Assembly: GCA_965644295.1 (NCBI GenBank)
Contig: CBFFRP010000210.1
Location: 124,001 to 188,000 of the forward strand
DNA: 64,000 nt
Origin: Paraphysomonas bandaiensis
Lineage: Eukaryota > Protista > Chrysophyceae
Reading direction: 5' to 3'
The notes below the pieces were generated by a model, which worked only from the letters and a program-made list of their open reading frames with translations, made no database searches and was not told the DNA's origin. The position numbers and the translations under genes are program-made. Positions 3,205-64,000 of the stretch are shown in pieces (position 1 is the first letter of the stretch; each line of letters opens with the position of its first letter).

Positions 3205-3209
3205 TTTTT

Positions 3210-9480: not shown

Positions 9481-9921
9481 ATTAGTTGTCTAGCTACTAA
9501 CAGGTGGCTATTGCTACTAATAAGGCTTTAAAATGTATTAATATAGTTACGATGTGCTGTTGTCATTTATATTTATTTCAGTCTATTTCTAAGTATTTCA
9601 ATTTTCCGAGTGTTTTGTTTTTAAGTATTTCGTGCAGGGATATAGGGAAAAATATATTGCAATACTATTGTTAGATTGCGTTCCATCAATAGTACTGATG
9701 GAGTTTTTAAAGCGGCCTTACAATACTATTGCAATAAATTAGTATGACTAATCAGTAAGTAAACACATCCGTAGTTTCCATTTTTAGTACTTCTCATTAT
9801 AAGTTCTAAGAAGGTCACTTGATAATTGATAATCAACCCACTATATTCTTAACTAATTAAAAGTTTCCTCATACTCATCCTCTGAACTCTAAGCCATCAT
9901 CAGTGATATCATCGCCATATT

Positions 9922-10143
9922 CATACATACATACATACATACATACATACATACATACATACATACATACATACATACATACATACATACATACATACAT
10001 ACATACATACATACATACATACATACATACATACATACATACATACATACATACATACATACATACATACATACATACATACATACATACATACATACAT
10101 ACATACATACATACATACATACATACATACATACATACATACA

Positions 10144-10173
<30 letters not shown>
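9922..10173. repeat. (CATA)n microsatellite, ~63 units
   Basis: Directly visible perfect tetranucleotide tract. Confidence 0.98.
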
Positions 10174-10174
<1 letters not shown>

Positions 10175-10307
10175 GGATATACCGCAAAGTACATGGTTAT
10201 ACACACAAAATCTCCACTCTCTGTTCGCATACATACACATACGTATCAAGCATCAGTGGTATCCGAGTCACTAATTCTCCATAAAAAAGTGATATCAACC
10301 CTTAAAC

Positions 10308-10546
10308 ATGGCATCGTTCGGTAAAGGTGATGTAGTTATTATTGGGGCTGGTTTGGTGGGGTCGCTATTAGCATATTTACTCCAGAAGAAGGGCTTCAGA
10401 GTGTCTGTGTTTGAGAGGTATCAGGATATCAGACAGATCCCCAGTCTCGGCAGGTCCATTAATTTAGTTATTACTAAACGTGGTCTGAGGGCTGTGGATT
10501 GTTTTGGTGAGGAAGGATTACGTGATGAAATACTCGCCTTAGCTGG
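10308..10546 (+). pseudogene. KMO: 5' fragment of a kynurenine 3-monooxygenase-like FAD monooxygenase
   Basis: VVIIGAGLVG Rossmann motif, VFER, and GRSINLVITKRGLRA (KMO signature GRSINLxxxxRG). Truncated where the 92-bp repeat begins. Confidence 0.8.
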
Positions 10547-10930
10547 CGACACTTACTTCTATTCACACTTAGTAACAACATAGTAACACTATATTCGATA
10601 CAACGTAACTTTTACTTACATAACCTTTCGACACTTAGTAACACTTACTTCTATTCACACTTAGTAACAACTTAGTAACACTATATTCGATACAACGTAA
10701 CTTTTACTTACATAACCTTTCGACACTTAGTAACACTTACTTCTATTCACACTTAGTAACAACTTAGTAACACTATATTAGTTGTCTAGCTACTAACAGG
10801 TGGCTATTGCTACTAATAAGGCTTTAAAATGTATTAATATAGTTACGATGTGCTGTTGTCATTTATATTTATTTCAGTCTATTTCTAAGTATTTCAATTT
10901 TCCGAGTGTTTTGTTTTTAAGTATTTCGTG

Positions 10931-19976: not shown

Positions 19977-21534
19977 TCATGGAGGATTCTGTGAACGAAA
20001 CCACTGCAGAACATTCACATGTTTATAATATGCAGCAGCAGATTCGCAAGAACCTTTCTTCCATGGACATGGGGGGTTCTGTGAACGAAGCCACTGTAGA
20101 GTATTCAATTGTCCAGACTCTGCAGCTGCCCTGCAAGTCCACTCATTCCAGGGACATGGAGGGTTCTGTGAACGAAGCCACTGTAGAGCATCCAATTGTC
20201 CAGACTCTGCAGCTGCACTGCAAGACTTTTCATCCCATGGGCATGGAGGGTCCTGTGAACGAAGCCACTGCAGAACATTCAAGTGCCCCTTCCTAGCAGC
20301 AGCTGCGCAAGTATATTCATTCCAGGAATCTGGAGGGTTCTGTGAACGAAGCCACTGCAGAATATTCAAGTGCCCTCCATCTGCAGCAGCAGTACAAGTG
20401 CTTCCAAACATTGAATCTGGAGCGTTCTGTGAACGAAGCCACTGTAGAACATTCAAGTGCCCACCACTAGCAGCAGCATCACAAGTAAACGCATTCCAGG
20501 GGCATGGAGGGTCCTGTGAACGAAGCCACTGCAGTACATCCAAGTGTCCTCCCTCTGCAGCTACATAGCAAGTCCACGTATCCCAGGGACATGGAGGGTG
20601 CTGTGAACGAAGCCACTGCAATACATTCAAGTGTCCACCTCTAGCAGCAGCTTCACAAGTTGCTTTATCCCAGGGACATGGAGGGACCTGTGAACGAAGC
20701 CACTGCAATACATTCAAGTGTCCACCTCTAGCAGCAGCTTCACAAGTTGCTTTATCCCAGACATGGAGGGACCTGTGAACGAAGCCACTGCAATACATTC
20801 AAGTGTCCACCTCTAGCAGCAGCTTCACAAGTTGCTTTATTCCAGGGACATGGAGGGTGCTGTGAACGAAGCCACTGCAATACATTCAAGTGTCCACCTC
20901 TAGCAGCAGCTTCACAAGTTGCTTTATCCCAGGGACATGGAGGGTGCTGTGAACGAAGCCACTGCAGCACATCCAAGTGTCCACCTCTAGCAGCAGCTTC
21001 ACAAGTTGCTTTATCCCAGGGACATGGAGGGTGCTGTGAACGAAGCCACTGCAACACATCCAAGTGTCCACCTCTAGCAGCAGCTTCACAAGTTGCTTTA
21101 TCCCAGGGACATGGAGGGTGCTGTGAACGAAGCCACTGCAATACATCCAAGTGTCCACCTCTAGCAGCAGCTTCACAAGTTGCTTTATCCCATAAGTATG
21201 TGGGGTCGTGTGTGTGTATATGTGTATGTATATGTCTCATGAGGTGCATCATCTGCTGTAGTCTGCCGTATAGTGCACATGTATTCATTAGTTGGGTGTG
21301 TGGGCAGCCCACAGACAGAGCCCATGAGACCATTGAGTTGGTCATACAGTAGTGAGATGCATGTGACTCAAGTCTCTCTCTGCTCTTATCTCTCGTGTTG
21401 TCTCTCGTGTTATCAGCCATATCGTGAAGTCCCTTACAAGTCATGACCACAGGAAGGAGAGCTGAGTGTGGGATCATAGAGATGATGAGACGAATCACAT
21501 CATCATTGAGAACAGATAGAGTGATTTCATTCAT
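19977..21534 (-). pseudogene. F-box-like + 26-aa ankyrin-repeat protein (PCPWDxxTCxxAAxGGHLxVLQWLRS), frameshifted
   Basis: ~15-16 repeats of 78 bp. A 2-bp deletion near 20760 splits the ORF and a second lesion lies at ~19977. N-terminal LSVLNDDVIRLIISMI is F-box-like. Intronless. Confidence 0.85.
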
Positions 21535-26741: not shown

Positions 26742-27631
26742 CTTTGTCATCTACTCTGGGACACCAATCCTTATTAAACTCCAGCATTATGGATAACATG
26801 GTTCGAAACAAATCAATAAGTTTCAACTGTTGGAAGTAAAACTGTTCGAACGTGACAGTTGTCACTTTCCTCCACTCCATAATCTTTATGTGTCTAAGAG
26901 AATCTCGTAGCTCCTCATAGAATCCCACACAATTAAAAACCCGAGTTTCCTTGGCTATTACACGTAGTAAGTCGGACAAATCCATCTCTGAAATCTCCGC
27001 ATGACCGAGATGATACACTTCTCTTAGATGATCTCTTAATTCTCCAGAGACAACCTTTTGTAGACGCACAGTGGTCTGTTCCTCTTCTTGAAAATCCAAG
27101 ATTTGTTTGACAGCTCTAGCCACTTTAGAAAGCTTTAGTTCATTGATACGAACTTTGCAAGTTCTTTCCTCACGCATTACAACAGTCTGTTGCACATTTG
27201 GAAGGTTAGCATTCTTTTTCAATTCCCTGAACAGCTTCCCAGGTTTCTTGCCTCCTAACAAAGCTTGAGTTCTAGTAGGGAATTCAGAAGCCACCTGCTG
27301 ATGTGGGCTTGCATACATATGTGTATGTGTGCAAAGCAATACCCAAGTACAGAAGTACAAAATAATGATTATTATCGTATAATGAATCATGAATAATACT
27401 GTCTACAATATCAACGGCTATTGCTAAATCCCAACAACAATCACCTTCCCTACAGTTTGTATTCCTAACTACATGGTACACGTATACAATACAGTACTGT
27501 ACTACTATTCATATAATACAGGACAAGTACACGTATATATTCTATATGTAAGTGGATGGTCCTACACTACCTCCCCTTATAATTGATGTGTTAATGTGTT
27601 ATATTGACACTCAATTCTGTAACCTTTGTTA

Positions 27632-30600
27632 TTAATCTTCTTCATCAGAAGAATAAACCACATTTCGAGGTAGTAAATTTCTTACATTTTCATCAGGATG
27701 TTGAGTTAGAAAATTTTGTAGAGCATACGTTTTTCTAACGTTAGCCCATGGTTCCCATGTAGGTTTTTCATACCCTATCCAATGTACTAGAAATTTTATT
27801 TGACTTTTCGGACCTTTAGCTCGACCTTTTATTTTTGAAATATGGTCAATAGCATAAAAGTTTCCACCATCTTTACATGCCACTTGTAAGGGGTCAATAG
27901 TAGAGGGATCGTAATTAAATTCCCTTAATTTCTTTATATGATAGTCTTTATTACGTTTAGTAACAATATCTTGAAGAGTATATTTATCTCCAATAACATT
28001 GACTACTCGCATTGGACCTTTAAGATATGGTAATAACTTACTTGCCGGTCCAGGACGTAAAGCATTTTGTCTATGCTCAACTAACACATAAGAATTTATT
28101 GGAAATTCTTTTGTTTGTATATTTGGTGCAGTTGCCATGTGGATTTCATCATGTTTGCGAAGATTTCGTCTTGCAATATCCATAATAGTGGACTGAACCT
28201 TTTGTATTCTATCTATCCAATGTGATAGCTTTTGTTCGTTTTCGTCCAAGTTCTCATTGTGTTCAATGAATAAACTTTTATCTAAATCTACTGCATTCCC
28301 AAATAGAATACTAGCGGGAGTAACGCCGGTGCTTCTATGTTTAGAAGAATTCATAATTCTTTGTACTAAAGGTAGATACATTGACCAATTATTTAGTACA
28401 TTCTTATCAAATATAATATTCCTTAAGTGCCTTAAAATTTCTTTATTAGCACGTTCAACTATAGCATTTTCTTCTTTAGAATACGCCATCGAAAATGATT
28501 GATTACTTCCAACCATTTCTATCAATGATTTTGTTAAATCATCCACAAATGCTGGTCCAAGATCCGAATGAATCTCAATAGGTGCTCCATATCTACCCAG
28601 GTGTTGAAGCAATCCCTTTGCCGCCGCCATGGCAGTGAGATTCTTAGTAGGGATTAATTCTACCCACCTAGAAAAAGAATCGATAATCACTAATATATTA
28701 GTGTATCCATCCTCATCTGGATGCAGACTCTGAATAAAATCCACTGCTATCCGTTGCATCGGGCCATATGTTGAGACAGTAAAGGGATGAGCATTAATTA
28801 TAGGTTTAATTCTACTCATCTTTTGACAACAAGGACAAGTTTTAATAAATTTTGTCACATGTGCCCCTTGCTTTGACCATTTATGACCATTGTCTTGTAA
28901 TTTTTGTATTGTACGATCAATACCATGATGACCTGTAACGTTGTTATGAAATCTTTTAATAATTTCCCATTCCTTGTTTGGAACTTTAATATCGGGAATT
29001 AGGGAAGCACATTTTGTTTGCATTTTAGATTCTAATGCACATAGTCTACTAAATGCATCAGCAACAACATTATCAGATCCTTTGATATCACATAGATCAT
29101 AATCATATGCTTGGAAACATTTCAACCATCGCTGAACTTTCTTATCCTTAGCGTAATCAGTTCTCAACTGAGTAATATTTTTATGATCTGTTTTGATCGT
29201 AAAGTATCTATACCTTAATATAGCGTAATCAGTTCTCAACTGAGTAATATTTTTATGATCTGTTTTGATCGTAAAGTATCTATACCTTAATAGGTAGTCC
29301 CATTTATCTAAGGCATAGTATATAGCATATCCTTCTTTCTGAGGTGTATCCCAATTCATCATTCTTTCATCGAATGTTTTACTGAGAAATCCTATTGGAC
29401 GTTCTACACCATCTACTACTTGGTAGAGGTATGCTCCTATTCCATAATCAGATGCATCGGTCAATAAATATATTGGTGACTCGTCATCAATGAAAAATAA
29501 TGTTGGACATTCATGGATCATCAATTTGATCTTTTCAAATGCTTCATTGGCATCCTCTGTCCATTGTAGACGTTTACGTCTATGATAGTTGAGAAGCATT
29601 TTATTTAACGGTCTCACCACTAAGGAGTGGTTGTGCACGTGATCCCGAAAATAATTTGCCAATCCAAGGAAAGATTTTAGACCCTTCATAGTTTCAGGCT
29701 TTGGGAAATTTAATACACTATCCAGACGTTCTCTAGTAAAGTGTAACCCTTCCTCATTTAGAGTATGTCCTACATATTGTACTTCGGACTCTCCTATTTT
29801 CACTTTCTCAGGATTAATGTAAACATTGTATTTCCTGAAGCGTTCTAGAACTTTAACGTAATTTTCAATTAGTTCATCTTCTGTAGAAGCATATATAATC
29901 AGGTCATCTAGATATAATTCACATATGAACATAATCAACCCGGCAAGCACAATTGTTGTTAATACTCGTTGAAAGTATGATGGAGCACCACTCAAACCCA
30001 TGGGTAGTCGGAGCCATTCGAATACTCCCCAGAAGGTTATAAATGCCGTCCACTTTCTCGAGTACTCTGAAATTTTAGCCTGGTAATAACCAGATACTAA
30101 ATCCAGAATTATGAAGTATTTGGGTTTCTTAGACCCAATACGTTCTAACATTTCTTTGATGTTAGGTATCGGCCAACGTTCCCTCTGTGTGTGCTTGTTT
30201 AGACCTTTATAGTCTACACAGAATCGCCATTTATCATTTGGTTTGGGAACTAATAATACCTGGCTATAATAAGGAGCCGTACTTGGTTGTATTATTCCAT
30301 GCTCCACAAATGTATCGATTTGCTTTTTACAAGCATACTGTCGTACTCGATCCATCTTTCGTGGCGGACCACAATGTTTTGGTTGTTCCCAGGCATCCCT
30401 ATCTACCTCTAATTCAAAAGGTGGAACATCCATTGGCATATCCGACACTGTGGTTTTAAATCTATCCTTATAGATTTCATGGATTTCTCTCACCCTCCTT
30501 TGTAAAGATTCGGGACCAGAGATTTTAGTTGGTAACGTAGCACCTTCTACTTTTTCCTGAGTATTTGTAACTATTTCTTCTGGAATTGACTCCAGATAGT

Positions 30601-31105
30601 TATCTCTAATCTCGCCTATATCTTCCTTTTCATATGCACTTATACGCATGGATGATATTGGGGGTGAATACATAGTACTAACCAAACTATTACTTGTAAG
30701 TAAATTATTATTATAACTAAGGTGTTCCTTAGCTTGGCGCCTTAATGTTTCCATGTTGTTATAACATGTGGCTCTCTCACTAATATGTTCCGAGAGAAGC
30801 TGAGTCTTCTCAGCATGGCCCGCGGCCGTAGCTAGCATTTTCCCTGCTAACTCTCTTTCCATAAAGTGAGATGGAAAATGATCAACTAATCTATATTTCT
30901 TGATAGTTTCTCTACCAATTATGATATCAAAGGTGCTATCTATTATCAAACATTGCAACTCAATATCAAGAGTATTGTTATACTCATCAGTTAATCTTAT
31001 AGTTATTATCATATATTGCTTGCTACTACAACAAGCATTATCAAGCGCACTACAAATTTTAATGTTACACTCGTGCAATGAAATATTATACCTAGCAACT
31101 AACAT
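27632..31105 (-). CDS. Gypsy pol: RT, RNase H, integrase, chromodomain
   Basis: WRFCVDY, YLDD, TDASDYGIGA, HHCC zinc finger, DDE core, GPM and FLVHWIGYEKPTWEP motifs. Confidence 0.95.
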   Translation of the reverse strand: MLVARYNISLHECNIKICSALDNACCSSKQYMIITIRLTDEYNNTLDIELQCLIIDSTFDIIIGRETIKKYRLVDHFPSHFMERELAGKMLATAAGHAEKTQLLSEHISERATCYNNMETLRRQAKEHLSYNNNLLTSNSLVSTMYSPPISSMRISAYEKEDIGEIRDNYLESIPEEIVTNTQEKVEGATLPTKISGPESLQRRVREIHEIYKDRFKTTVSDMPMDVPPFELEVDRDAWEQPKHCGPPRKMDRVRQYACKKQIDTFVEHGIIQPSTAPYYSQVLLVPKPNDKWRFCVDYKGLNKHTQRERWPIPNIKEMLERIGSKKPKYFIILDLVSGYYQAKISEYSRKWTAFITFWGVFEWLRLPMGLSGAPSYFQRVLTTIVLAGLIMFICELYLDDLIIYASTEDELIENYVKVLERFRKYNVYINPEKVKIGESEVQYVGHTLNEEGLHFTRERLDSVLNFPKPETMKGLKSFLGLANYFRDHVHNHSLVVRPLNKMLLNYHRRKRLQWTEDANEAFEKIKLMIHECPTLFFIDDESPIYLLTDASDYGIGAYLYQVVDGVERPIGFLSKTFDERMMNWDTPQKEGYAIYYALDKWDYLLRYRYFTIKTDHKNITQLRTDYAILRYRYFTIKTDHKNITQLRTDYAKDKKVQRWLKCFQAYDYDLCDIKGSDNVVADAFSRLCALESKMQTKCASLIPDIKVPNKEWEIIKRFHNNVTGHHGIDRTIQKLQDNGHKWSKQGAHVTKFIKTCPCCQKMSRIKPIINAHPFTVSTYGPMQRIAVDFIQSLHPDEDGYTNILVIIDSFSRWVELIPTKNLTAMAAAKGLLQHLGRYGAPIEIHSDLGPAFVDDLTKSLIEMVGSNQSFSMAYSKEENAIVERANKEILRHLRNIIFDKNVLNNWSMYLPLVQRIMNSSKHRSTGVTPASILFGNAVDLDKSLFIEHNENLDENEQKLSHWIDRIQKVQSTIMDIARRNLRKHDEIHMATAPNIQTKEFPINSYVLVEHRQNALRPGPASKLLPYLKGPMRVVNVIGDKYTLQDIVTKRNKDYHIKKLREFNYDPSTIDPLQVACKDGGNFYAIDHISKIKGRAKGPKSQIKFLVHWIGYEKPTWEPWANVRKTYALQNFLTQHPDENVRNLLPRNVVYSSDEED

Positions 31106-31259
31106 ATATCAGCAAGTTCTTGGTTAATGAAATTATTCCCAGTAGCCCCCGTGTCCAATAAAGCTTTAGCCCTTAGATTTTCCTTTACCTGTTGTACATT
31201 GACATCAGCTTTAGGACATACAAAGACATCGAGCATATCATTATTCATGTCAATAGCAT

Positions 31260-32540
31260 TTATATATAAACACTTAGGGCATGATAACTTACTTGTTTTC
31301 GATCTCGGAGGACCATCAGGATTCTCCACATAAGGGCAGGTACTCCAACCCATAGCCGCATATTTTTTGCCCTGTGTGGAATCTTTCCATGGCTTCTTTT
31401 CATGGTTAGCCCATGCACAGGTTTTGCGGGTGCAGTCACCTTTATGAAGATTACCGCATATCCAACATGCTTCCTTAGTATCAGTTGTTGCTTTAGTACT
31501 TGAGGATGAGCTGGAGGATGAAGTTTTTGTAGTCTTTTAGACTTGTTAGACTTAGACGTTTCTTTGGAATCCAATTTAGTTTCCATCCTCTTTACTTTTC
31601 TCACAGCTTGACTATAGTCATTGTTAAGCTCTCGCACCTTTCTACAGAATGCTCCGAAATCTTTTGGTGCAGATTGACCTTGGCCTATATCCGCTATAAA
31701 TTTCTCTTTGGCATCCTTTCTGAAGGAATGTCCGCCCACAAGTTTGATGTTTTTCTTGAGGGTTTTGACTATGGTATCCGAGGCTACCTCTGTGAGACTT
31801 GCCTCCGGAATGAGCTTATAAAGCTCATTCAGACGTCCATATTCTTTTAAGAATACTTTAGGAACATGAATATCCACCTTAACTTTTGGTCCAATGATAT
31901 TATCTATGAACCTAGGAAGAGGCTCCAATGTATCAGAGTATCGCTCCTCTTCCTCTAGAAAGGCTTGCTTTAACCACTGAATCAATTCCTCAGTAGTTAC
32001 AATGTTAGGATCTAGCCAGTCCTCGTCAGACTCATCTCCAAAATCCTGCTGTCGCTGAAACTGAAGCATATCACGCACTGTTGGTGCCATGATTTCTGAC
32101 CTTATGAATTTTGTCCCTTTAGGATCTCTTTTCGAGAGATTTTCACAAAATTCGATGATATCCTCATCTTGCACACTACCTAAGTAGGGAATAGAGTCGG
32201 TATTGATTACTTCATGTGGAGTGGATTCCGTTGCAATGACTTCATTCAAGTCAATGCGCTCACTCCTGTTGGGGTGCGGATCTCCACTCCTTTGCTTCTT
32301 TCTCTTTGGTTGAGAAGAAGAGAGCTCACGAAATGATACTCCACTCAATTCTCCTTCCGCCTCTACTGATGTTTCAGTTTGAGGAGAAGATTGCATTTGA
32401 GATGATGTTGTTGCATCTCTTGCTCGTTTTCGAGAGGATTCTCTCTCTCTTTTCGTCTTTTTAGACGAAGAACCCGAAGCAGCTAACAATTCCTCTATTT
32501 GAGGAGCTGCTTTTATTTTGCTTCTCTTACTTTCCCCCAT
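31260..32540 (-). CDS. Gypsy gag (zinc knuckle CWICGNLHKGDC out of frame)
   Basis: First ORF after the 5' LTR, basic N-terminus. The knuckle at ~31435-31470 is in a shifted frame. Confidence 0.8.
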   Translation of the reverse strand: MGESKRSKIKAAPQIEELLAASGSSSKKTKRERESSRKRARDATTSSQMQSSPQTETSVEAEGELSGVSFRELSSSQPKRKKQRSGDPHPNRSERIDLNEVIATESTPHEVINTDSIPYLGSVQDEDIIEFCENLSKRDPKGTKFIRSEIMAPTVRDMLQFQRQQDFGDESDEDWLDPNIVTTEELIQWLKQAFLEEEERYSDTLEPLPRFIDNIIGPKVKVDIHVPKVFLKEYGRLNELYKLIPEASLTEVASDTIVKTLKKNIKLVGGHSFRKDAKEKFIADIGQGQSAPKDFGAFCRKVRELNNDYSQAVRKVKRMETKLDSKETSKSNKSKRLQKLHPPAHPQVLKQQLILRKHVGYAVIFIKVTAPAKPVHGLTMKRSHGKIPHRAKNMRLWVGVPALMWRILMVLRDRKQVSYHALSVYI

Positions 32541-33756
32541 AATATTGTTATATCACAGAGATTGAGTACTACTTATTAAGTAATATTACTGTGGGCTTGC
32601 ATACATATGTGTATGTGTGCAAAGCAATACCCAAGTACAGAAGTACAAAATAATGATTATTATCGTATAATGAATCATGAATAATACTGTCTACAATATC
32701 AACGGCTATTGCTAAATCCCAACAACAATCACCTTCCCTACAGTTTGTATTCCTAACTACATGGTACACGTATACAATACAGTACTGTACTACTAATCAT
32801 ATAATACAGGACAAGTACACGTATATATTCTATATGTAAGTGGATGGTCCTACACTGATCACCATCCTCCTCAGCATTGCCATTTGACTGAGCAGTAGAA
32901 GTATCTTCCTCCTTCAACAGTTCTCTTACAGACTCATCCCGCCAAGGAGTGCGATAGTGCTCCGCTAAATTATGCAGAGTAGAGTATCTCCTAGTATCAC
33001 GTTTCTTTACCGGTTTCGGCAACGTGTCAGGAACTGTAGGTGTTCCTTTCGTAACTGTTTCATCTGCCCCTGGGATATTTTGATCTTCCCTTAAAATCGT
33101 GGGGCTCTGCGCTCTAGAGCCGACAGGTGTACCTCTACGTGAGGCCCGCTCTTCGAGTCGCGTGACTCTGAATGTTAAGTCATCTATTCTCGTATCGAAT
33201 TTCCTTTCCAAGGCATCGAAACGTGAGAGAATGATCTCGAGCATTGAAGGCTCTAAATCATCCTTAACACTGCCTTCAGAACCAGAGTGGCTCTTAGGGC
33301 TACTCCTACCAACGGGAGTTTGCATCTTCCACCTTTTAGCTGCTGTTACACTCTTTAGTTTATATTCCCTCACAGTGTTTATATACTGCGTCTTATGACG
33401 CAGCCTCGTTTGACAACTCAACTGACACCTCACAGTTTGGTTTGATAACCAAGACTATGGCTCGTGATAACGCTAACTACTATCACTGTATAGGAATCAA
33501 GAAAATGAGACCAAAGAAGTGATATTATTACAGGTAAACTTTTGTTTTAATCAACTATACTCGAGTGACTGACTCCCGCGAAGAATCAGCACGCAAACAC
33601 CACCGCTAGTGATGTCAGGTCGCTAGTACCCAAGTAAGGTTAACATAAACAATAACTGAGTCACAACAGAAACATAAAGTATGAAGACAACCGTAGAGCT
33701 GCACACACACAACGTCATCCATGTCACACTGTGTTGCAACACACAACCACAACGCA

Positions 33757-36700
33757 CGTAGAGAAATAAGAGGATGCTCTTTTCAGTTTAGCACTTGAAG
33801 TGACTGTATAAGATATGCATAGAGCACATAGAGGTGCATGGTGTTATGTTATGCAGTGTTTTGTGTACGGCTGTAGACTAGAAGTATAATTTTCTCTTAC
33901 TAACGAGTTCTGTAGTAACTGCGAAGAGAACCTTGCTTTTGACTACCTGTAGTGTAGACTGTGTGAAAAGGCAACGGGGGTATTCCGTCCGTTTATTGAT
34001 CTGTAGCATCCGTGACTTCCGACCGAGTACCGTGTTTTTTCTCTGCGTAAGAGAAAATTATGAAGAAAATGACAAAAGAGAGATATCCCAGATATCCAAG
34101 ATCTGGAAGAAGACAAGAGTCTGACAGTTATGACGCAGTGCCAATGCTAAGATATGGCGCAAAATGTAATCTGCCTATTTTCAAGCAGAAATTGGTGGCC
34201 GAAGCCATGGTGAGGTACGGAGACCTTGCACGACGCTATAAAACTATTAGACGAATATCAAGAGTTCAACGCAACGAAAGATCCACTATCGCTATGGCTT
34301 GCAATAAAAAAGACACACAAGGTGGCGACAAGCTCCAATGTGGGAGCAGTAATGAAAGCGGAGACAAGGCGCAAAATACCAAGAAGTTCGGCAAGGAACT
34401 TTCGAAAGCATCGTGACATACAAGGAGAAATTTGATTATTTACTGGATGCATACAAAGAAATGGACAACGCCAAAAAGTCCGACACCGATGTGGCGATGG
34501 ACTTCTTTAACGGACTAGACGACCACAAAGAATCCAAAAGGGGGCAGAAGAATCCACGGCACAGAGAACAACGGAGGAAACCCCTGATATGTTGGGGGTG
34601 CGGCGAGCCAGGGCACCGACTCAATGAATGCCCTGACAACCAAGACGCAGATGAGAGAAACTGTGCGGTGACCCTAAAGAACGCATTCACATCCGGAGGC
34701 CACCCATTCAGGTGGTACGAGGTACTGCTAGATAATCAGGCGGACGTATCAGTGGTTCACCCTGCATTACTGCACAATATAAGGCCGGCGACCAGGAAAT
34801 GTACCGTGGCAGGACTCTCAGGGCACGCTATGGAGTTACCAAATGTAGGAGATCTGGATCAATTCTTTCCCTGCACAACGGCTGATCATTTACGTGCGAG
34901 TGTGCTATGTCAATCAGATGTGGAGGATATGTACGATGTAACATATGTGCAAGGCAAATCGTATACTGTGCATTTACCTGGTAGAGACCTGGTATTCGCA
35001 AGAAGGAACAAAATGTACGTGGCTGATATGCGAGACTGGGCCACTGGAAACGTACATGTCACAACAGTAGCTGACATGGAAGCGAGGCACTCGAAGGCCG
35101 AAGTGGCTCGAGCACGAGAGGCATGGGACCTAGTCAAGACCTCGGGATTTGACTCTGAGAAAGACGCAATCAACTTAGTCAGTGATGGCAACATAACAGG
35201 ACTGAAACTCACCGCAAGTGACGTACGGAGAGCATTCGAGATATATGGAATCCCATACGAGTCAGTGCGCGGGAAGCACACTCACAAAAAAACGGGGCGC
35301 CAGTACGTAGACACCGCACTGAAATCGGAGATGCAGCGAGAGCAGAGGCTCTACTCAGACATTTTCAGCGTGCGACAGCAGTCCTTTCTTCTCACGATGG
35401 CGGAGCCACTGGGAGTGTCAGTAGTCTCTGCAATACAGAATGAGACAACAGAAGCATTAGGACTCGCACTTCAGGAACACGTTAATCTGCTACGGAGCTA
35501 CGGGTATGTGCCGACCATCGCTTACCTCGACCCACAACCTGGCTTCAAACCACTCCGAGGGCAGATTACAGGGGTGGAGATAGGCGTCGCGGGAGCAGGC
35601 GATCACCTCGACAAAATTGACTCAAAAATACGACGCCTGAAAGAGATGATCAGGAGCATCCATGCAGGACTACCGTGGGATTTACCTGACGCCAATGTGA
35701 AAGATCTGGTACGGTATGCAAACAGCAGGATGAATCTAAGAAGGCCATCCACCAATGGATCAACGGTAGCGCCGCGAGTGGCATTGACAGGGATCAAACG
35801 GAATTTCAAGAAGGAGCTGGCTCTCGCATTCGGTGACTACGTGGAGTGCTACGACCCGAAGGTCAAGAGCAACGACGCAGAGCAGGACCGGACAGAGCCG
35901 TGCATAGCCTTGTATCCTGCAGGCAATGCAAACGGCAGCTGGATTTTCCTGAATCTGAAGACAAACAGATATGTCAGCAGAACAAATTGGAGGAAGATGA
36001 TAACCACGCAGTTGGTGATAGACGCAGTGAACAAGACCGCACAACTAAATCGAAAAAATGCAAGGCACTCACCAGCTATCGCGGACCAACCGGACCAGTG
36101 CGGAGAAGCGCAAGACGACACCACAGAGGGTGGGAATGCAACTGCGACAACAGAGCATGAGAGCAATACCACAGAGATGAGCGAAGACGCACCTGCTACA
36201 AACAATTCGGAATCTGTGGGACAAATGGGCGAGGAAGAGAGCCCGACGACTACCGGCAGTGACGCCCCTAATGAAATAAATACAGAAGACATAACAGGGG
36301 TGGTACACAACACAATGAGCTCACCGTCACTAACAGAAGGAAGGAGAGCAGCTGGTGCTATACGGAAACCAGTGATGTACCGTGCCTATCACACAAGCAT
36401 TACACATGGGTTGAAGGAACACGGTAAGGAGGCATACCTAGCTATAGTGCGGGAGCTGAAACAGTTGCTGCACGACAAGAAGGCCATAGCCCCAGTGCAT
36501 CGGAGTGAGCTGTCAACGACCCAGATCAAAAGGGCGATTCGGTCATTGATGTTTCGAAAAAATCAAGGCCAGACTGGTTGCAAATGGCGCGCAGCAGGAC
36601 AGAAAGCTGTACACCGATACATCGTCGCCTACAGTAGCGATGCAATCAGTATTTGCATGTCTAGCAATAGCAGCGAAAGAGAGACGACATATTTCAACAG

Positions 36701-38248
36701 TGGACATTGGAGGAGCTTACCTGAATGCCGAGATGACCGGAGAAGAAGTCATTATGGAGCTCGAACCGATGCTGGCCGCTATCCTGAAAAAGATGGACCC
36801 AGCCGTACAGCCATACATAGACGAGCGCGGAAGACTGCTAGTACGATTGGACCGGGCCCTATACGGATGTGTTCAGAGCGCGAAATTGTGGTACGATACA
36901 CTGAGGAATTACCTGGAGAGCATCGGCTTTGCAGTCAACCCCGTAGACCAATGCATTTTCAATCGGACCGTCAACGGAAAACAATGCACAGTGACCCTGT
37001 ACGTAGACGACCTATTAGTGATGTCACAGTGCAAGGAAGACACAGAATGGCTAGTGGCAAAACTGAAACAGCAATACGGCGAGGTGAAACACTGTACCGA
37101 CCATGACATGTCGTATATAGGTATGCACATACATGTACAGGACGGGAAGGCAGTGGTATCGATGAGGGCATACCTGGAGGGAGTGCTCGAGGAGACGGGG
37201 ACCACAGGAGGGACGGCTTCCCCGGCAACAGCATCTCTTTTCACCGAGAAGTCCGAGCAGAAATTGGGCAAGAGAGACGCCGCAGAATTCCACACAGTGG
37301 TGGCAAAGCTGCTATACCTGGCAACAAGGGTGAGGCCGGATATTTTGTTGTCTATTGCGTACCTGGCTACTAGGGTGAAGGACCCGACGCAAAATGACAA
37401 GCAGAAGCTGGGGAGAGTGATGAAGTACCTGGCGGTCACCAAGAACCAAGATTTACACCTGCGGATAGGAGATAAGATTCAGGTAAAAGCGTACATTGAC
37501 GCATCATTTGCGACACATCAGGATGGAAAGGGCCATACCGGAGTGGTGGTCAGCGTGGGGGATGCGGCGGTGCTTTGTCGGTCGACAAAGCAGAAACTGG
37601 TCACCAAGGACTCCACTGAGTCGGAATTGGTCGCACTCTCTGACATGCTGCCGTGTGTGATGAAATTGCATGAGTTCCTGTGTGGTCAGGGGTGTATAAT
37701 GGACTCACCTACAATATTCCAGGACAATGCATCTACTCTCAGCCTCGTAACGAAAGGAGGAGGCAAATACCGATCGAAGTATCTACGAGTAAGGCAGGCT
37801 TTAGTCGAAGAACACCATTATAGGGGAGACGTGAAGCTTCAGTACTTACCTACAGGAGAGATGTTGGCTGATGTGCTGACTAAACCCCTACAAGGAAAAT
37901 TGTTTCGTCATTTGATGTGTCGTATCGTCGGAGAAGCATAGACACATCACAGGGGTGCGTAGAGAAATAAGAGGATGTTCTTTTCAGTTTAGTACTTGAA
38001 GTGACTGTATAAGATATGCATAGGGCACATAGAGGTGTATGGTGTTATGTTATGCAGTGTGTATTGTACGGCTGTAGACTAGAAGCATAATTTTCTCTTA
38101 CTAACGAGTTCTGTAGTAACTGCGAAGAGAACCTTGCTTTTGACTACCTGTAGTGTAGACTGTGTGAAAAGGCAACGGGGGTATTCCGTCCGTTTATTGA
38201 TCTGTAGCATCCGTGACTTCCGACCGAGTACCGTGTTTTTTCTCTGCG
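33757..38248 (+). mobile_element. Copia-type (CoDi-like) LTR retrotransposon with CG...CG termini, frameshifted
   Basis: 291-bp LTRs at 33757-34047 and 37958-38248. 5-bp TSD ACGCA. PPT CACAGGGGTG. Domain order: knuckle CWGCGEPGHRLNEC, protease LLDNQA, integrase, RT (DIGGAYL, LYGCVQSA, YVDD), RNase H (DASF, ADVLTKP). Confidence 0.95.
34047..34062 (+). promoter_or_regulatory. Putative self-priming PBS GTAAGAGAAAATTATG overlapping the first ATG
   Basis: Reverse complement of LTR nt 33886-33900 (15/15) and of 3' LTR nt 38086-38101 (16/16). Confidence 0.7.
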
Positions 38249-43986: not shown

Positions 43987-44835
43987 TGTAATATATTCAA
44001 TTTAGTGGTTCGAAGCAGAGCATATGAATATACGCATACTGCAGAGCTGATCATCAGAGAGACTCACATAAGAATAACTCCACTTGAGTGTCATTCTCCT
44101 CTCTGATTTGAAGGTATATACTAATATGATTGTATCATTTATAGATACTTTCTCATAGTGTCCTGTGCGTATTGATGTATATGAAGATACTGTGTTGGAG
44201 CATGTCAATCATTGTTGACGTACAGCATACTCTGCGGAGGAGCCGTATGAACTCGATAATAGAGTTCGGTAATAGAGAGACCCACCCAAGAACTGATATG
44301 TATATACTGATATGAATGTAAGATATACTTTCTCACTGTGTCCTATACGTATTGATGTAAATAAGGACGGTGTATGAAACATGTCAATCATTATCACCTA
44401 GATATAGGGTGCTTTGTATCTTGATATCTACCATCTATCATAAATAGAATATTAGTGCTACCTGTAACACTCTGCAGAGGATGAATACGCCAGCCTATTA
44501 GTAGAATAGTATGTTGACATTACCATGATACCTGGTAATCGTAGGTAGTATATATTGATTATTCATAATAAGATGCAAATTCTTCACTCTGGAAGTTGCT
44601 TGTAAATAGTATTGTAATTGTAGACTTATCCATAGTTGTTGATTTATTGCTATTATGGAAGAAGCGCCATTAAAAGAGGTTCTAAGTTAAGTGCAGCTAT
44701 TGCAGTACTAAGAATGTTGTTGAAAGAAAATGATTCACTAATGGCTGGTTACCCCAATGAAGAATGAGGAGAATGTCAGGAGCGTTGGACTTATGGTTGG
44801 ATTAAATGATGCCAATATCGACATATGATATTGCA
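43987..44835 (+). mobile_element. Diverged solo LTR related to the 2331/59393 family
   Basis: TGTAATAT...ATATTGCA termini. The segment 44538-44660 (ATAATAAGATGCAA..CTCTGGAAGTTGCTTGTA..ATGGA) aligns with the family LTR. No matching TSD. Confidence 0.65.
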
Positions 44836-46211
44836 CTAATACACGTGCCTAATCGTCTCCCTATAGGTGGTATATATAACCTCTACATTTCCTACTGATA
44901 AGTATCCCTATTTATATTAAAATGTACCTATAGGCACTGCCTACATGTATCAATACTACCTACAGGTACTACCTAAAATATAATACCAATACGACCTAGA
45001 GGTACTATAATTAACAACAATAAACACAATATAATATATATATTGCAAAATAGGAAATAATATAAAAACCAGCAATATAGCAGATCTGTATCAATTATGA
45101 AAAGACAAAGCATGTATTCAATTAAAATAAGACGGTATTCGCATTAACATATTACGAAGTAAAAATTAACGGCAATTACTACTTAGAACCTACTAATATA
45201 CATACCACGACAAATCTTAACCAAAGCGTAAACTAGCTCCCAATCACCTGCTAAGAAGCAGAAGCATTGTGCATTTCAGATGTCTTCACCGCCAATCTGA
45301 GTTCAGTTAGCTTCCAAGGTAATGACAACATTTGTTCGTCCAAGCCATCTTACACCGATCTTACACCGAGATAACTTCTGGGGTACGATACTGATACAGA
45401 GGTGTATAGATAGGAAATAATTTATCCAAAATATTATTTCTATTAATTGCATGCATTAATAATACTAATATGAACGCTGCCATTGATGGATATTGAAGAT
45501 GCTAACGGTCACATTACTTGAATCCTTGAATTATCGGGAGAACTTCACAGGATGCACACTGAGCATGCATTCTGCAAAATAACGACTCAAGCAGTATTTT
45601 ATCCTCTTGTAAGGGCCCTCTTCCACTTCACTGTCTCTTCTGAGGGTAATAACCACACACATGACTCAGTTGTCTCAAGCGGTTAAAAGTCATCGTACTG
45701 GTCTTGCACAGCATGAAGCTTGCGGTACAGTGAAGTCATGTCAGTCCATTAACGACTCCATCAATCGTCCTTTGTTTTAATCTGCACGTTGGGTCATAAT
45801 TTCACCCCACAATCGACTGTCTGCGTGTCTATATATGGTCACATGACCCTCATATACACACACTCCTGCCAGTATATACAAAATACATATACCAATAATA
45901 CGTAATTTACACAATTCACTTTTGCGAAATGTTTATAAAAATATAGCTTTTTTTCATAAAAGCCTGATATTTATTATATATATAAAAATCACCCTTTAGA
46001 TAATTGTACCAGCTGCACTGCGATACCACACTGAAACCCCCTCAAGATATAAAGTAGCAAGATCTTTTGGATATTTTAGATATGATCTTGCGCCAAGCGC
46101 CAACACAAGCAAGTCACAAGTCTCTAATTCTTTCACGTTTCTGGGAAATAAGCACAGAGTACAACAGAGACGAACTTAAGGTGAACCTTAGCCTCAACCT
46201 TCTACACATTG

Positions 46212-58900: not shown

Positions 58901-59392
58901 ATTTGGGCTCCCGCTGGAACTAAATTAAGAAATCTAATATTGAAACTAGTATCATACTATATAACGCTACGAGTACTGTTTGTGCGTCGCCACATACACC
59001 AAGGTGCAATCATATAGTCGATGTGACCGCTAAACCTGATGACATTTTGATAAAGTTGCTTAAATTGAGTTTATGATGCGTTTTACAATAATTAATGTGG
59101 TAGATGTGAAGAGAATACATGTTTTAAAGGCATATTATTTCTAAATCAAATGTAAAATGGAACGGTTACGATATATACATAATATATGTATACTATTGTA
59201 CTATGTAATTGAAGTAAAGTTCTATCGGTAAATTAAAAATACTTGCAATCGATAATCAAGTGAGTTTCTGGCACGCTTACCTGCAATAATAGATGCAGAA
59301 TCAATTGCACTAGTGTCTATCCACTCCTGATAGTATAGAAATATATGACGAATAATAATACAAAAACACCACACAACATACCAGATTGAATA

Positions 59393-60268
59393 TGTAATAA
59401 CCAGCTATCAGGTTATTCTATTCTACAAGCTCTCTATTGTATATGCTTAAGTTTGTACATACTATCTGTGCAAACATAGATTGAATATTATTATTATTAC
59501 CATAACTCACACTGAGATATATGATGTATTATGACTATGACAATTCATGCTTATTATTGATATTTACATAATCATTCAAAAGACAAAGAGAGACATGATT
59601 ATCAATAATGAGACATAATGATGATACTGATGATGGATGATATATATATATGTTCTTATTATATATATATATTGACTTTAAGGCTGGAGAAGTTTACTGG
59701 AGAATTCCGGGTTTGATATCCACGCTGATAGATGTGTATTGCCAGATTATCCAGTAATACAGTTATACATTACGTATTTCCTTCAGTGCTTATTGGGGAT
59801 TGATTGTACTAAGGAGTACGAATACCAGGCTTCAACTACAAAGAGAATACTGAATGTATCTTCCCTTATACAGTTGTGATGAGTTATTATGATCAACTGT
59901 GTTAGACTGATGTGTTTGGTATTGAATATGAATGATGTTCATTCCATTGATCACGGAATCGTAGGTAGACATATTTATATTATTGATAATAAGATGCAAT
60001 TTCCTTACTCTTGAAATTGCTGGTAGATAGCATTGTAGTTGTAGACATATATTTGTTCATTGTGATTTGATTATATTGTTATTATTATGGAGGAGGAGAC
60101 TCTTGATAGCGCACAAGAGTCTACTAAATTCGAGTCAGTGAGAAGGACCCTCAGGCTTATGCTTGGAGGGTTAGACCCTTCCATTGCCAATGCCAGTGAG
60201 GATCAAATCCGGGATATAGGCTTGGCATTTGGGTTGTCTGAGATCGAATCAGAGACGTTGGTGTCTCA
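59393..60268 (+). repeat. 5' LTR (876 bp) of the probable autonomous relative of the tandem element
   Basis: TGTAATAACCAG...GTGTCTCA termini, colinear similarity to 2331-3204. Confidence 0.88.
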
Positions 60269-63200
60269 ATTTTTTAAGGAAATTTCATCTCTCAATAAAC
60301 AAAGTGACGACTTTAGAGAGACAGAAACTCATGAAGCAGACAGTCAAGCAACGACTGTTCCAGAACTGGTGGATCGTCTTAGTAGTCCGGAGGAGGTACC
60401 CTTGTCAGCCCGAAAACCTCTCGCATTCGGTAAGGACGCTATTCAACCATTGAGGGCTCAGGATGATTTTTGTTCGTTTGATGCAGATGCGACAGGAGAT
60501 AGTCCATTGCATATGGACCCCTTGCCATTCAAGGAACAAAGTAACAAGGAGGCTGAGGCAAAGGAGTGTCATTATACACCCTTACCTCACGCAGGGGATG
60601 AGGCACACAATGTGCTACATTCCACCTCTGGATTGCAAGGTGTATATAACACCAGCAGACCAGACCAACTAGGTAGAGATGCGGATAGGTGTCAAATCTG
60701 TCAGCGACTCACAGATCCCAAGCGTCTCACCGCAGGAGGAATATGTTATTATTGCTCGGAAAATCAATGTATCGATTGTAAGGACCAGGTAAATTCAATG
60801 GAAATTCAGGGTGGTCTATGTTATCGATGCCGAGTAAGAAGGGGGATACTCAGATCAAAGAGACCCACCACAGACACATTAGAGAAGTGCATAATATTGG
60901 GCCATAGAAGATTGCGTCCTCGGCCAGACCTAAACGAGGACACATATATGGAGCATTTGTACCTGGATCGTGGGGCTAGAGACCCTATGGACCTAAAGAT
61001 TTCTCTTAACATCCTGCAACAGTACGCAGATCGACGGAGGGTACATACCACCAGATGGTCAAGACAGCGATACACCGCTCATATAGCAGAGCCACTGCAG
61101 CATTGGGAGCAGCAGATTTACATGGCTTGTACAGCTACTGAGGTCACTGATCGTTTACAGGACCACTTTTTTGAGCAAATGAAAATAGCAAGAGAGAGTT
61201 CTGCGGAAGATATTTCTCAGCTTGCCCAACTAGTCTTAAATCGAGGAAACGGCTTGCAATTACCATCAAATGTTCGCGAGTGGTTAAGTAGGCTGACAGT
61301 TCTTGACAATGTACATGAGTTAGTGGCTGAAGAGCACATTTACGAAACAGCGGAATTGTGTATGGTGCTGAACCAATACCTTGATATAAGAGACATGGCT
61401 GAAACTATGTGGGAGGAGGCCGATAGCCAACTAATGATGCGCTGCAACCTCCTCAGCAAACAACTCAGTCAGCAAAATAAAAAATTTGGATCTTGGGAAG
61501 AGAGGACCGTTGACTCTGACGATGAGTCATACCACTCCTTCGTCAGCAATGGTAGTCGGGGTTCCTTTGTCAGCAGAGGAAGTCGGTCAGCGGATACCAG
61601 ATCAAGTACATCCCGAGTGTTGAGTTCTAGGGGTTCAAGATCGAATTCCCGTATTTATCCAACTGAAGATGGCAGACTGCTAGACGCACAAGCATTCGGG
61701 TGTCACCTTCAACAAATTGGAGAGCAACACTGGTCACTGCTCTGTAACCAAATGCGATCGTCTAGAGCCATGCGGTTAATGTCTAAAGCATTGCCCAAAG
61801 CTACTCCATGGAGAAGAGAAGTCAAGGAGCCTACTCTCTACATGAAGACTGATGACAAGATGCGTCTAGAGAAAGATCATTCTAATCGATACCCCATTGA
61901 AAGAGGACTCCGTTTTGCTGTCCAGAAGGCACGTCAGGCCAAGATGGGGCTGAAAGATTTGGTCATACAGACAAAGAATGGTTGGTGTTTTAAGGGCGGC
62001 TTTAAAGAGGAACTGCAACGGTTGTCTTTGAATCGTGTGCCAGAGATATGGGATGACCAGGAGGATAGCCAATTAGCCACTGAATATGAATTTTGGATGC
62101 GTCGTTGGGTGCATTTCTGCCATTGGGCTATCCGTAATTATTGTCCCGTACAGACCAATGAACAGCGTGCCAAACAGATTGAGGACTGGGCTGCTCCTGA
62201 TCTCGCTACGCCTACAGCAGTTATGCAACTATATTATGAACTAAAAGAGGTAGTTGAACATAATACGCCGGATCGCCAGACGGCACAGGTGATGGAAGAA
62301 TCTATGCGCCGAGTGGTAGGAAAAGAGCCTGTTTGGGGTAAATCGTTGGTTGCAGCGTACGACAATAAGATCACAAAAATTGAAAGGGCGAAGTCGACTG
62401 AAAATTGGAGTCTATCATGGGAGGAGGTAGAATCAATCTGGCGAGAGATTCAGGAAGAATTCCAGCAGGGAACGCTGCTATACATTATACGTCCTGATGT
62501 CCAATCTAGTAAACAACCAGACACAACTAAGGGTGAGGGAGGCTTACGACGACATCACAAAGTTCATGCCGGCATACGCGAGGAACCCAAACCATCTCTC
62601 ACACCGATTGAGATTGCGAAGCTTACATGTTCACGATGTGGCCTTCGACATAGTATTAACAACGCTCAATGCCGACGCATCACGAATGGGAAATTTGACC
62701 CACTTGGATTTGTGTCTGAGACACCACGTAACATTGAAAGGAATCGAATATACAATTTTTGGTTGTCCAGATTGAATAAGTATAGCCAACCTTGGTCTCA
62801 GTTGCCTACGGCTCAGAAGGAGGAATTTCAGGCAGCATTTCGGGATTTGACTAGCCGGTGGGATGGAGGGAGTGCTTTGCATACGACATTCATTGGTGGC
62901 GAACGGAAGAAATCCAATTCCATAGCATCAAGTGTTTCTAGTACACCACAAGTACATTGGGCGGATAGTGATGATGACTCTTCTTTCTCTACACTGGATG
63001 ACTCTATACCTGCTCACAGTACAGACTCACTTTCCGGTTCACGATCTACTAAGTCAAAATCAAAACCCAAACGAAAGGTTCATGCTGCACAAAAAGTTCG
63101 ATACTTAGTGCACACTGTGACACCTAGGGATGAATCTCAAGATACATTATCCATGTTTCGTGTTCTATATGATACAGTTGATGAAACTGGTAAACCAGTA

Positions 63201-64000
63201 CAGAGAGTCGGTTGGCACCAGGTGGATCATGGCCCTATGGAGTCCTTGATCGACGAAGAGTGTGCAGCCCTCTTGAATCTTAAGCGAGTACGAATCCCAA
63301 AGAGAGACCGGTACATTATTCGGGGAATAGGTTCACAGGATATCGCTGTGAGTTGGAGAGCTTGTCTTACCTACACTGTTACTGCACAACGGGTCTTACC
63401 TGTGGCAGTGTTGCCGGGAGAGGCACCACTTTTGAACAATGCAAAAGAACAAGTTCAGTTGAAAGCATGGATACCAATTATCCCGAATTGTTCCATGAAT
63501 GTAATCTTTGGAGGGCATGCATTACGACGTATCAAAATGATTGACTTGTTTGATCATAAACTGCTGTTGTTCCAAACTAATGGTATTCAGTATGCAATGC
63601 CTCAATTCAACTGGAATGAGACTGTTACGCAAATGGCATCAGCTCAGGACCCTGTGGTACAGAAATGTGTTGCACGCCATCTCCGTGAAAACAAACCTCA
63701 ACCTCACAAGGCTGCAGTCTGCATATCGAAACATATCCCACCGCATTCTAAGATGCGGATTCCTGTTCAAGTGGGCAAGGGTGCTCCGTTAGGTGGATGG
63801 ATACAGACTCAGCCAGAGGTTGCAAGGATTAATTCAGGTGATGATGCTAATGAGCCCGTCTTACAATTTGAAGATGCTATTTGTACGGCGAACAGACCTT
63901 ATATATGGGCTTCTAATCATACCGATGATTGGATCCATCTACCGGGTAGACCGCGTTTAGTTGTACGACTTCAACCCATATTATTGGGGATGCAGGTTCA
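60087..64000 (+). CDS. Gypsy-type gag-pro polyprotein, >1304 aa, open at the window end (absent from the ORF track)
   Basis: Manual translation from ATG 60087 shows no stop to 63998. It contains 4xCxxC (60690-60830), knuckle CSRCGLRHSINNAQC (62628-62672), protease-like QVDHGPMESLI..VIFGGHAL (63219-63524), then an IPPHS..NHTDDWIHL dUTPase-like remnant. Confidence 0.88.
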   Translation, partial: MEEETLDSAQESTKFESVRRTLRLMLGGLDPSIANASEDQIRDIGLAFGLSEIESETLVSQFFKEISSLNKQSDDFRETETHEADSQATTVPELVDRLSSPEEVPLSARKPLAFGKDAIQPLRAQDDFCSFDADATGDSPLHMDPLPFKEQSNKEAEAKECHYTPLPHAGDEAHNVLHSTSGLQGVYNTSRPDQLGRDADRCQICQRLTDPKRLTAGGICYYCSENQCIDCKDQVNSMEIQGGLCYRCRVRRGILRSKRPTTDTLEKCIILGHRRLRPRPDLNEDTYMEHLYLDRGARDPMDLKISLNILQQYADRRRVHTTRWSRQRYTAHIAEPLQHWEQQIYMACTATEVTDRLQDHFFEQMKIARESSAEDISQLAQLVLNRGNGLQLPSNVREWLSRLTVLDNVHELVAEEHIYETAELCMVLNQYLDIRDMAETMWEEADSQLMMRCNLLSKQLSQQNKKFGSWEERTVDSDDESYHSFVSNGSRGSFVSRGSRSADTRSSTSRVLSSRGSRSNSRIYPTEDGRLLDAQAFGCHLQQIGEQHWSLLCNQMRSSRAMRLMSKALPKATPWRREVKEPTLYMKTDDKMRLEKDHSNRYPIERGLRFAVQKARQAKMGLKDLVIQTKNGWCFKGGFKEELQRLSLNRVPEIWDDQEDSQLATEYEFWMRRWVHFCHWAIRNYCPVQTNEQRAKQIEDWAAPDLATPTAVMQLYYELKEVVEHNTPDRQTAQVMEESMRRVVGKEPVWGKSLVAAYDNKITKIERAKSTENWSLSWEEVESIWREIQEEFQQGTLLYIIRPDVQSSKQPDTTKGEGGLRRHHKVHAGIREEPKPSLTPIEIAKLTCSRCGLRHSINNAQCRRITNGKFDPLGFVSETPRNIERNRIYNFWLSRLNKYSQPWSQLPTAQKEEFQAAFRDLTSRWDGGSALHTTFIGGERKKSNSIASSVSSTPQVHWADSDDDSSFSTLDDSIPAHSTDSLSGSRSTKSKSKPKRKVHAAQKVRYLVHTVTPRDESQDTLSMFRVLYDTVDETGKPVQRVGWHQVDHGPMESLIDEECAALLNLKRVRIPKRDRYIIRGIGSQDIAVSWRACLTYTVTAQRVLPVAVLPGEAPLLNNAKEQVQLKAWIPIIPNCSMNVIFGGHALRRIKMIDLFDHKLLLFQTNGIQYAMPQFNWNETVTQMASAQDPVVQKCVARHLRENKPQPHKAAVCISKHIPPHSKMRIPVQVGKGAPLGGWIQTQPEVARINSGDDANEPVLQFEDAICTANRPYIWASNHTDDWIHLPGRPRLVVRLQPILLGMQV

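Follow-up and report, generated by a model that had tools for sequence, protein, structure and literature searches.

A 64,000-nt stretch of the Paraphysomonas bandaiensis genome (Chrysophyceae; contig CBFFRP010000210.1, G000:C210:124001-188000), hereafter the window, contains two related Ty3/Gypsy retrotransposons, which we call elements A and B. In both, a short stretch inside the long terminal repeat (LTR), here termed the arm, is complementary to the site that follows the LTR. A first-pass annotation of the window, made from the letters alone, had read this complementarity as the mark of a self-primed reverse transcription like that of the fission yeast element Tf1.

Element B lies near the right edge of the window and extends beyond it as an intact, 10.3-kb Ty3/Gypsy element. 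Its 5' LTR occupies positions 59393-60268 of the + strand (876 nt, with TG..CA ends), and its 3' LTR lies past the window end at G000:C210:192794-193669. The two copies are 9401 nt apart and match with 100% identity over 876-877 nt. A 4-bp target duplication (AATA) is present at both ends of the element, and a polypurine tract (PPT), GGAGGGGGTAG, stands directly ahead of the 3' LTR. For both elements, the LTR limits were set without using the complementarity between the arm and the post-LTR site.

The coding content of B is split between two open reading frames (ORFs). The gag-protease ORF (1356 aa; ORF 788-4858 of locus L031) is stop-free from 60087 to 64000 on the + strand and on past the window. 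It begins within the LTR and spans the LTR end, the spacer behind it, and the candidate primer-binding site (PBS). The second ORF (1521 aa) encodes pol in the same frame, with one stop between the two (L031:4856-4873). Pfam searches of the pol product identified RVT_1, RNase H, SET, Integrase_H2C2, rve, and a weak SH3_Tf2-1 domain, with SET located between RNase H and integrase (E 3.5e-7; L031:4874-9436). No chromodomain was detected by the Pfam search. The best solved-structure match of the reverse transcriptase (RT)-RNase H region was Ty3 RT/RNase H (E 1e-56). This match and the RT-RNase H-integrase order bear out the Gypsy identity given in the first-pass annotation. Together, domain order, TG..CA termini, target duplications, and PPT establish A and B as genuine Ty3/Gypsy (Metaviridae) LTR retrotransposons.

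The open gag frame (1363 codons) is kept in at least eight genomic copies of B. As several of these copies also have identical LTRs, the family is young, and it is multi-copy and recently active. Among 21 public sequencing runs, read as assembled contigs that show neither RNA ends nor strand, those containing element B included marine polyA metatranscriptomes. Contigs from these libraries were ~97-98% identical to B (runs X5 and X6; 59300-61000), placing the B family or a close relative in ocean RNA libraries. Individual contigs span U5, PBS, and gag (60161-60626, 60228-60630, and 60046-60232).

Element A is organized as an array on the + strand, in the order LTR-internal-LTR-internal-LTR with an 805-bp duplication. 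The first LTR (2331-3204; 874 nt, TG..CA) is 100% identical to the last (6067-6940), and a GTGT target duplication flanks the whole array at 2327-2330 and 6941-6944. The first internal region is 588 nt long and is closed by a PPT at 3780-3792, the same tract that precedes the 3' LTR of B; the next LTR begins at 3793. The middle LTR (4598-5473, arm at 5213-5223) is followed by spacer and PBS, the latter at 5479-5489. The last LTR retains its arm (6680-6690), and flanking DNA without a PBS follows. Family A is known solely as such arrays of LTR, ~590-nt internal region, and LTR (2331-6940, and also G000:C108 and C398). What is left of the internal region is spacer, PBS, PPT, and a gag start that has decayed. 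Element A is a non-autonomous derivative and a relative of B, and must itself be copied in trans. Its spacer-PBS junction is repeated at C108 (two copies), at C398, and at L075, a subfamily with a different U5 end.

Complementarity between the LTR arm and the post-LTR site

In element B, the LTR arm at 59992-60007 (core 59997-60007, CAATTTCCTTA) pairs with 60275-60290 (TAAGGAAATTTCATCT) at 15 of 16 positions, the lone mismatch being C59997 opposite T60285. The downstream site, the candidate PBS, is identical in 11 genomic copies of B. In element A, the arm at 2944-2954 (CAATTTCTGTA) is the exact reverse complement of 3210-3220 (TACAGAAATTG), pairing at 11 of 11 positions. A T-rich spacer separates the terminal CA of the LTR from the PBS, with TTTTT in A (3205-3209; spacer and PBS together 3205-3220) and ATTTTT in B (60269-60274), where it encodes Phe-Phe of gag. 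TATA-like boxes precede both arms. The box of B, TATTTATA at 59972-59979, lies 20 nt before the start of the complementarity and 25 nt before C59997, and the TATATAT box of A (2917-2923) lies 27 nt before C2944. Between the two elements, two adjacent pairs are altered on both sides (arm TG vs CT, PBS CA vs AG). The two pairings, the double change, the TATATAT box of A, and a gap of 5-6 nt had been claimed in the first-pass annotation, and each point held on re-examination: the quoted strings are all present at their coordinates, both pairings and the double change were recovered, the TATATAT box is in place, and the gap of 5 nt in A and 6 nt in B follows from independently set LTR limits.

The extent of this pairing exceeds chance expectation. 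When the 30 nt after each LTR were compared with the element's own LTR and with 2000 shuffles per LTR that preserved its composition, the observed match was equalled in 2/2000 shuffles for B and 9/2000 for A. The best matches of A and B fall at homologous LTR positions. In both B (z-score -3.6) and A (z-score -2.9), the minimum free energy (MFE) fold and the centroid fold are closed by the helix of arm and PBS, and perfect 11/11 pairing is kept by the non-autonomous A. The complementary site adjoins the U5 end, where the primer of the minus strand must bind, and no TGG-type PBS follows the LTRs of A or B.

Genome-wide pattern searches revealed three arm/PBS states at the same positions: CCTTA/TAAGG, CTGTA/TACAG, and CTTCA/TGAAG. 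Family B combines arm CAATTTCCTTA with PBS TAAGGAAATT, family A combines CAATTTCTGTA with TACAGAAATTG, and a B-like subfamily of 91% LTR identity (L019, C435) combines CAATTTCTTCA with TGAAGAAATT. The sequences flanking the arm (ATAAGATG on the 5' side and CTCTGGAA on the 3' side) are nearly invariant over ~110 LTR copies. Variation instead clusters at positions 8-10 of the arm and has its counterpart in the PBS, three adjacent pairs changing together on the two sides. Some ~40 more LTR loci, nearly all of them solo LTRs, 3' LTRs, or decayed copies, yielded no further state; among these, L075 shares the state of A, and 7 bp with a bulge remain in the decayed L080.

The covariation was quantified in a six-sequence alignment (A1) of the 16-pair helix. 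In register, 87.5% of the cells were paired, compared with 37-55% when the 3' partner was slid by 1-3 columns. Double-sided change was found at four pairs, and the covariation score was equalled in 0 of 500 shuffles. RNAalifold also found the helix de novo. The PBS substitutions change gag residues (K/Q/E in FFKEISS, FLQKLIL, and FFEEISS), and as they are non-synonymous, coding constraint cannot explain them. Pairing of arm and PBS is maintained by compensatory change in this genome. In B and in the third state, nucleotides 2-11 of the arm, counted from C59997, are always paired, and nucleotide 1 faces T in 13/13 copies. This pattern of one unpaired and ten paired nucleotides would fit a transcription start at C59997.

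RNAalifold predicted two further helices, at columns 21-28/276-283 and 35-51/258-274. The first (60012-60019 with 60267-60274) joins the T-run and LTR end to GGAAAUUG, a conserved sequence close behind the arm, and the second pairs a 17-nt stretch of R with the U5 end. Neither of these accessory helices shows double-sided changes, and distant relatives have no A-rich partner for the T-run.

A third family is represented in the window by a fragment at 44300-44900, whose arm-homologous stretch (44576-44586, + strand, CAAATTCTTCA) is not followed by a PBS. From this arm, the first-pass annotation had predicted that intact members would carry the PBS TGAAGAATTT. A genome-wide pattern search for CA, a T-run, and TGAAGAATTT gave no match, so the literal site is absent from the genome. 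However, the 44576 copy is a singleton variant of the usual third-family arm, CAATTTCTTCA, and B-like-subfamily LTRs bearing that usual arm are followed by TGAAGAAATT. Taken literally, the prediction failed. In its abundant form, the third family is a tandem repeat of 2.5-2.6 kb, found at G000:C127:145400-151500, C186, C247, and C66 (L053-L056). It keeps the LTR promoter and arm region, differs in its downstream part, lacks a PBS, and has no arm complement in its unit.

Two rearranged loci, L073 (G000:C253 near 99295, + strand) and L074 (G000:C451 near 57433, - strand), consist of the U5 end, T6-7, and TGAAGAAATTG, followed by a reverse-complemented LTR. Starting at the arm, the inverted part extends back across U3 and the PPT and enters internal sequence; in the forward LTR, the arm and most of R are missing. 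These loci look like the products of rearrangement or mispriming at the inverted repeat formed by arm and PBS. We considered that they might be fossils of snapped-back strong-stop DNA and rejected this in its simple form, as the inversion runs past the PPT into internal sequence. A search for the reciprocal junction of the inversion found none.

Distant relatives with a SET domain

A protein search with the RT-RNase H region uncovered a large clade of elements (relatives P0002-P0070) in ENA, JGI, and Logan assemblies, with 48-59% identity and the order RT, RNase H, SET, and integrase. Many members have an added Exo_endo_phos (AP-endonuclease-like) domain before RT. As in B, a chromodomain is absent from the listed relatives of this clade. 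Outside it, the next matches were generic Gypsy elements at 35-40% identity.

We examined the contigs of ten SET-clade relatives, five of which, from metagenomes of other organisms and at 53-59% RT identity, could be scored. In all five (L096, L102, L103, L104, and L095), the LTR end CA is followed by (A)T5-7 and then by a PBS complementary to a stretch of the element's own LTR. Upstream of each arm, at a distance of 17-22 nt, is a TATA-like box; the gag ATG lies inside the LTR, downstream of the arm. L096 has an 864-nt LTR, a CTCT target duplication, and the arm/PBS pair TCATTGTTA/TAACAATGA. The corresponding pairs are AAGTTTTA/TAAAACTT in L102 (LTR of 608 nt) and CATTGTTA/TAACAATG in L103 (LTR of 881 nt). 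For L104 (TAAATCTA/TAGATTTA) and L095 (GAATTTCA/TGAAATTC), the LTR start is marked by the PPT and TGTAATAAC. The arm sequences of the five relatives are unrelated, and the layout is common to all. Arms of unrelated sequence thus recur at the same anatomical position.

A blind scan of the whole 10-25 kb loci was performed for CA, a T-run, and then an 8-mer with its complement 60-700 nt upstream. Each of the five loci gave a single match, always at the LTR end. Ten reversed sequences used as controls gave 0 matches, and ten opposite strands gave three. In L096 and L104, the MFE and centroid folds are closed by the helix. A further relative, L099, has a possible 8-mer composed of A and T only.

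A self-priming model and its alternatives

Tf1-like self-priming of reverse transcription is, in our judgment, the best reading of these data for this Gypsy family, and probably the correct one. The same proposal in the first-pass annotation is now supported by the position of the site, the three covarying states, the five relatives, and the lack of a tRNA-type PBS. The mRNA of Tf1 pairs through its first 11 nt with a PBS just after the 5' LTR, and RNase H frees the primer (PMC7175516, PMC4600332). The cut separates nt 11 from nt 12, and a 'pretzel' structure is completed by two accessory duplexes (PMC7175516; bioRxiv 10.1101/2022.12.06.519325).

By analogy, we infer a transcription start at the arm, cleavage by RNase H, and use of the arm as primer. 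Transcription would start ~20-27 nt after the TATA-like box inside the LTR, so that the genomic RNA would have the arm (in B, with core CAAUUUCCUUA) at its 5' end or close to it. This end would fold back over ~270 nt of R-U5, which also code for the first 61 gag codons, and the arm would pair with the site starting 5-6 nt past the terminal CA of the LTR. The element's own RNase H would then cut after the paired arm, as in Tf1. From the 3' end thus freed, reverse transcriptase could copy the U-run and U5 into minus-strand strong-stop DNA, and a tRNA would be dispensable for priming.

Several observations weigh against this model. The start of transcription at the arm is deduced from sequence, and the two polyA libraries lack a contig over the arm region (59965-60045). 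Arms lie 17-25 nt after their TATA-like boxes, a rather short distance if the box directs the start, and transcription might therefore begin within the arm itself. A spacer of 5-7 nt would leave the linear cDNA with extra bases past the CA, which integrase would have to remove. Within the 16-nt pairing, the C.U mismatch is kept in B and in the third arm/PBS state, and the six sequences of alignment A1 represent three or four independent lineages. In the relatives, pairing is short (8-9 bp) and AT-rich, and the helix is missing from the MFE fold of L102. The 8-mer of L095 is not significant alone, and the region searched contains three 8-nt matches. Four further relatives (L097, L098, L100, and L101) were left unscored, their LTR ends being undefined in tandem or truncated contigs or for want of an LTR pair.

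The alternative that survives best, although we consider it unlikely, is that the helix of arm and PBS is a conserved long-range RNA structure between the 5' leader and early gag, with a role such as packaging, dimerisation, or translational control, and that priming depends on something else, for instance the A-rich 3' end of an RNA, such as a poly(A) tail, annealed to the U-run. The U-run abuts the terminal CA of the LTR in every relative, and priming there would end the cDNA at the CA with no spare bases. In the Dictyostelium element Skipper, too, a pyrimidine stretch replaces the tRNA PBS, and its priming is unexplained (PMC5006619). The deduced rather than mapped start at the arm likewise leaves room for another role of the helix. 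However, a primer duplex on the U-run would be very weak, with five to seven A:U pairs, and conservation of the T-run has a coding explanation in the Phe-Phe that it encodes. The covarying helix stops exactly at the spacer, with the 3' end of the arm directed toward U5, which is the geometry needed for extension. The same geometry has been proven experimentally for Tf1 (PMC7175516).

Priming by a cellular tRNA or tRNA fragment, with the match to the LTR incidental, appears very improbable. Half-tRNA and internal tRNA primers are known in some Copia lineages (PMC6317226), but no TGG start follows the LTR here, and the 64-kb window contains no tRNA gene. Of the 13 exact complements of the B PBS in the genome, 11 correspond to the PBS sites themselves, and two lie at C1:169407 and C578:5477, loci left uninspected. 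The first-pass annotation had named a matching tRNA as the finding that would speak against self-priming, and none of the 13 complements coincides with any of the 63 listed tRNA genes. In addition, each element's PBS tracks its own LTR, varying with it from one subfamily or relative to the next, and a host tRNA offers no explanation for this.

Least credible of all is a chance match inherited by common descent: the sequences are AT-rich, A and B share ancestry, and 8-mers do match by chance at this scale (as the three 8-nt matches in L095 illustrate), but composition-preserving shuffles rarely equal the pairing, 3-4 pairs have changed on both sides, and unrelated arms occupy the same anatomical position in five relatives against 0 matches in the ten reversed controls.

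Other repeats in the window were also inspected. An unrelated LTR element at 33757-38248 has 291-nt LTRs, and the 14 nt right after its 5' LTR are perfectly complementary to LTR positions 130-143, which makes it by sequence a second self-priming candidate in the window. A Gypsy element on the - strand at 27302-32856 has identical 267-nt LTRs and a post-LTR site that begins with the palindrome GTAATATTAC. Neither a TGG-type PBS nor an LTR complement of >=7 nt was found after its 5' LTR. Tandem repeats at 19983-21237 (period 87 nt, 11 copies) lie within long minus-strand ORFs, and others at 9161-10940 form two blocks with a period of 92 nt.

Relation to proven and predicted self-priming elements

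Self-priming has been proven for Tf1 and inferred for Tj1, other Tf1/sushi chromoviruses, the Tcn1 clade, and the plant Copia TAR lineage (PMC4600332, PMC6317226). We compared the present elements with the Tf1/sushi group, represented by Tf1 and Tf2 of S. pombe, Tj1, Tosmo, Tcry1, sushi-ichi, Maggy, and Skippy. As in that group, the PBS after the LTR is complementary to a short LTR stretch after a TATA box, and a tRNA-type PBS is lacking. Element A pairs over exactly 11 nt, as does Tf1. The predicted duplexes 3' of the arm, between the LTR and PBS-adjacent sequence, recall the three-duplex 'pretzel' of Tf1 (bioRxiv 10.1101/2022.12.06.519325), although without compensatory change. Element B also resembles Tj1 and some fission-yeast relatives in having one in-frame stop between gag and pol.

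In contrast to the Tf1/sushi group, B has no detected chromodomain and carries SET between RNase H and integrase. Its nearest relatives form a clade of their own in marine and other metagenomes. A conserved T-run of 5-7 nt separates the LTR end from the PBS, and gag starts inside the LTR, so that both spacer and PBS are coding. Pairing lengths here range from 8 to 16 nt. A PBS inside a gag ORF that begins in the LTR has a parallel, in layout only, in Ty1 of S. cerevisiae, where the gag ORF starts in R-U5 and the PBS lies within coding sequence. Ty1 is a Copia element, and its primer is the initiator tRNA-Met.

The self-priming signature also recurs outside Tf1/sushi proper. For the Tcn1 clade of fungi and mosses and for the Copia TAR lineage (Houba and Osr-1), self-priming was predicted, as here, from complementarity between LTR and PBS and the lack of a tRNA match (PMC6317226). 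Those elements belong to other lineages and hosts, and their predictions rest on complementarity, to which the present elements add covariation within a genome and conservation across a clade. Skipper of dictyostelids is likewise a protist Gypsy element that lacks a TGG PBS and whose LTR is directly followed by a stretch of pyrimidines (PMC5006619). Unlike Skipper, which lacks a complementary LTR region, the present elements have both a T-run and a complementary site.

Judged by their sequence features, the present elements would belong to the self-priming functional kind and would extend it to a new lineage of elements and a new group of hosts. Given this functional likeness and the missing chromodomain, a defining feature of the Tf1/sushi group, we file them under the functional kind. 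Features of their own are the conserved T-run spacer and the PBS within a gag ORF that starts in the LTR. To our knowledge, experimental proof of self-primed reverse transcription exists for fission-yeast elements only.

A broader hypothesis, which we advance tentatively and regard as possible but somewhat doubtful, is that self-priming is an ancestral trait of the whole clade. A large, undescribed lineage of marine-protist SET-domain Gypsy elements, some with an AP-endonuclease domain, would then have arrived at self-priming independently of the Tf1/sushi chromoviruses. Its members would use a U5-7 spacer and a primer of 8-11 nt embedded in gag coding sequence, and the PBS would be rewritten from the primer in each cycle. 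Such rewriting would explain both the fast, concerted change of arm and PBS and the unconverted first nucleotide.

For the SET clade, these results provide an annotation rule: the LTR end CA, followed by T5-7 and then by the complement of a stretch after the TATA box of the LTR. Finders of PBS sites that rely on tRNA sequences will fail for these elements. As the B family is young, has multiple copies, and occurs in RNA libraries from the ocean, the prediction of self-priming is directly testable. The presence of this signature in a SET-bearing, chromodomain-less Gypsy lineage of a marine microbial eukaryote suggests that tRNA-independent priming is more widespread, and has perhaps evolved repeatedly.

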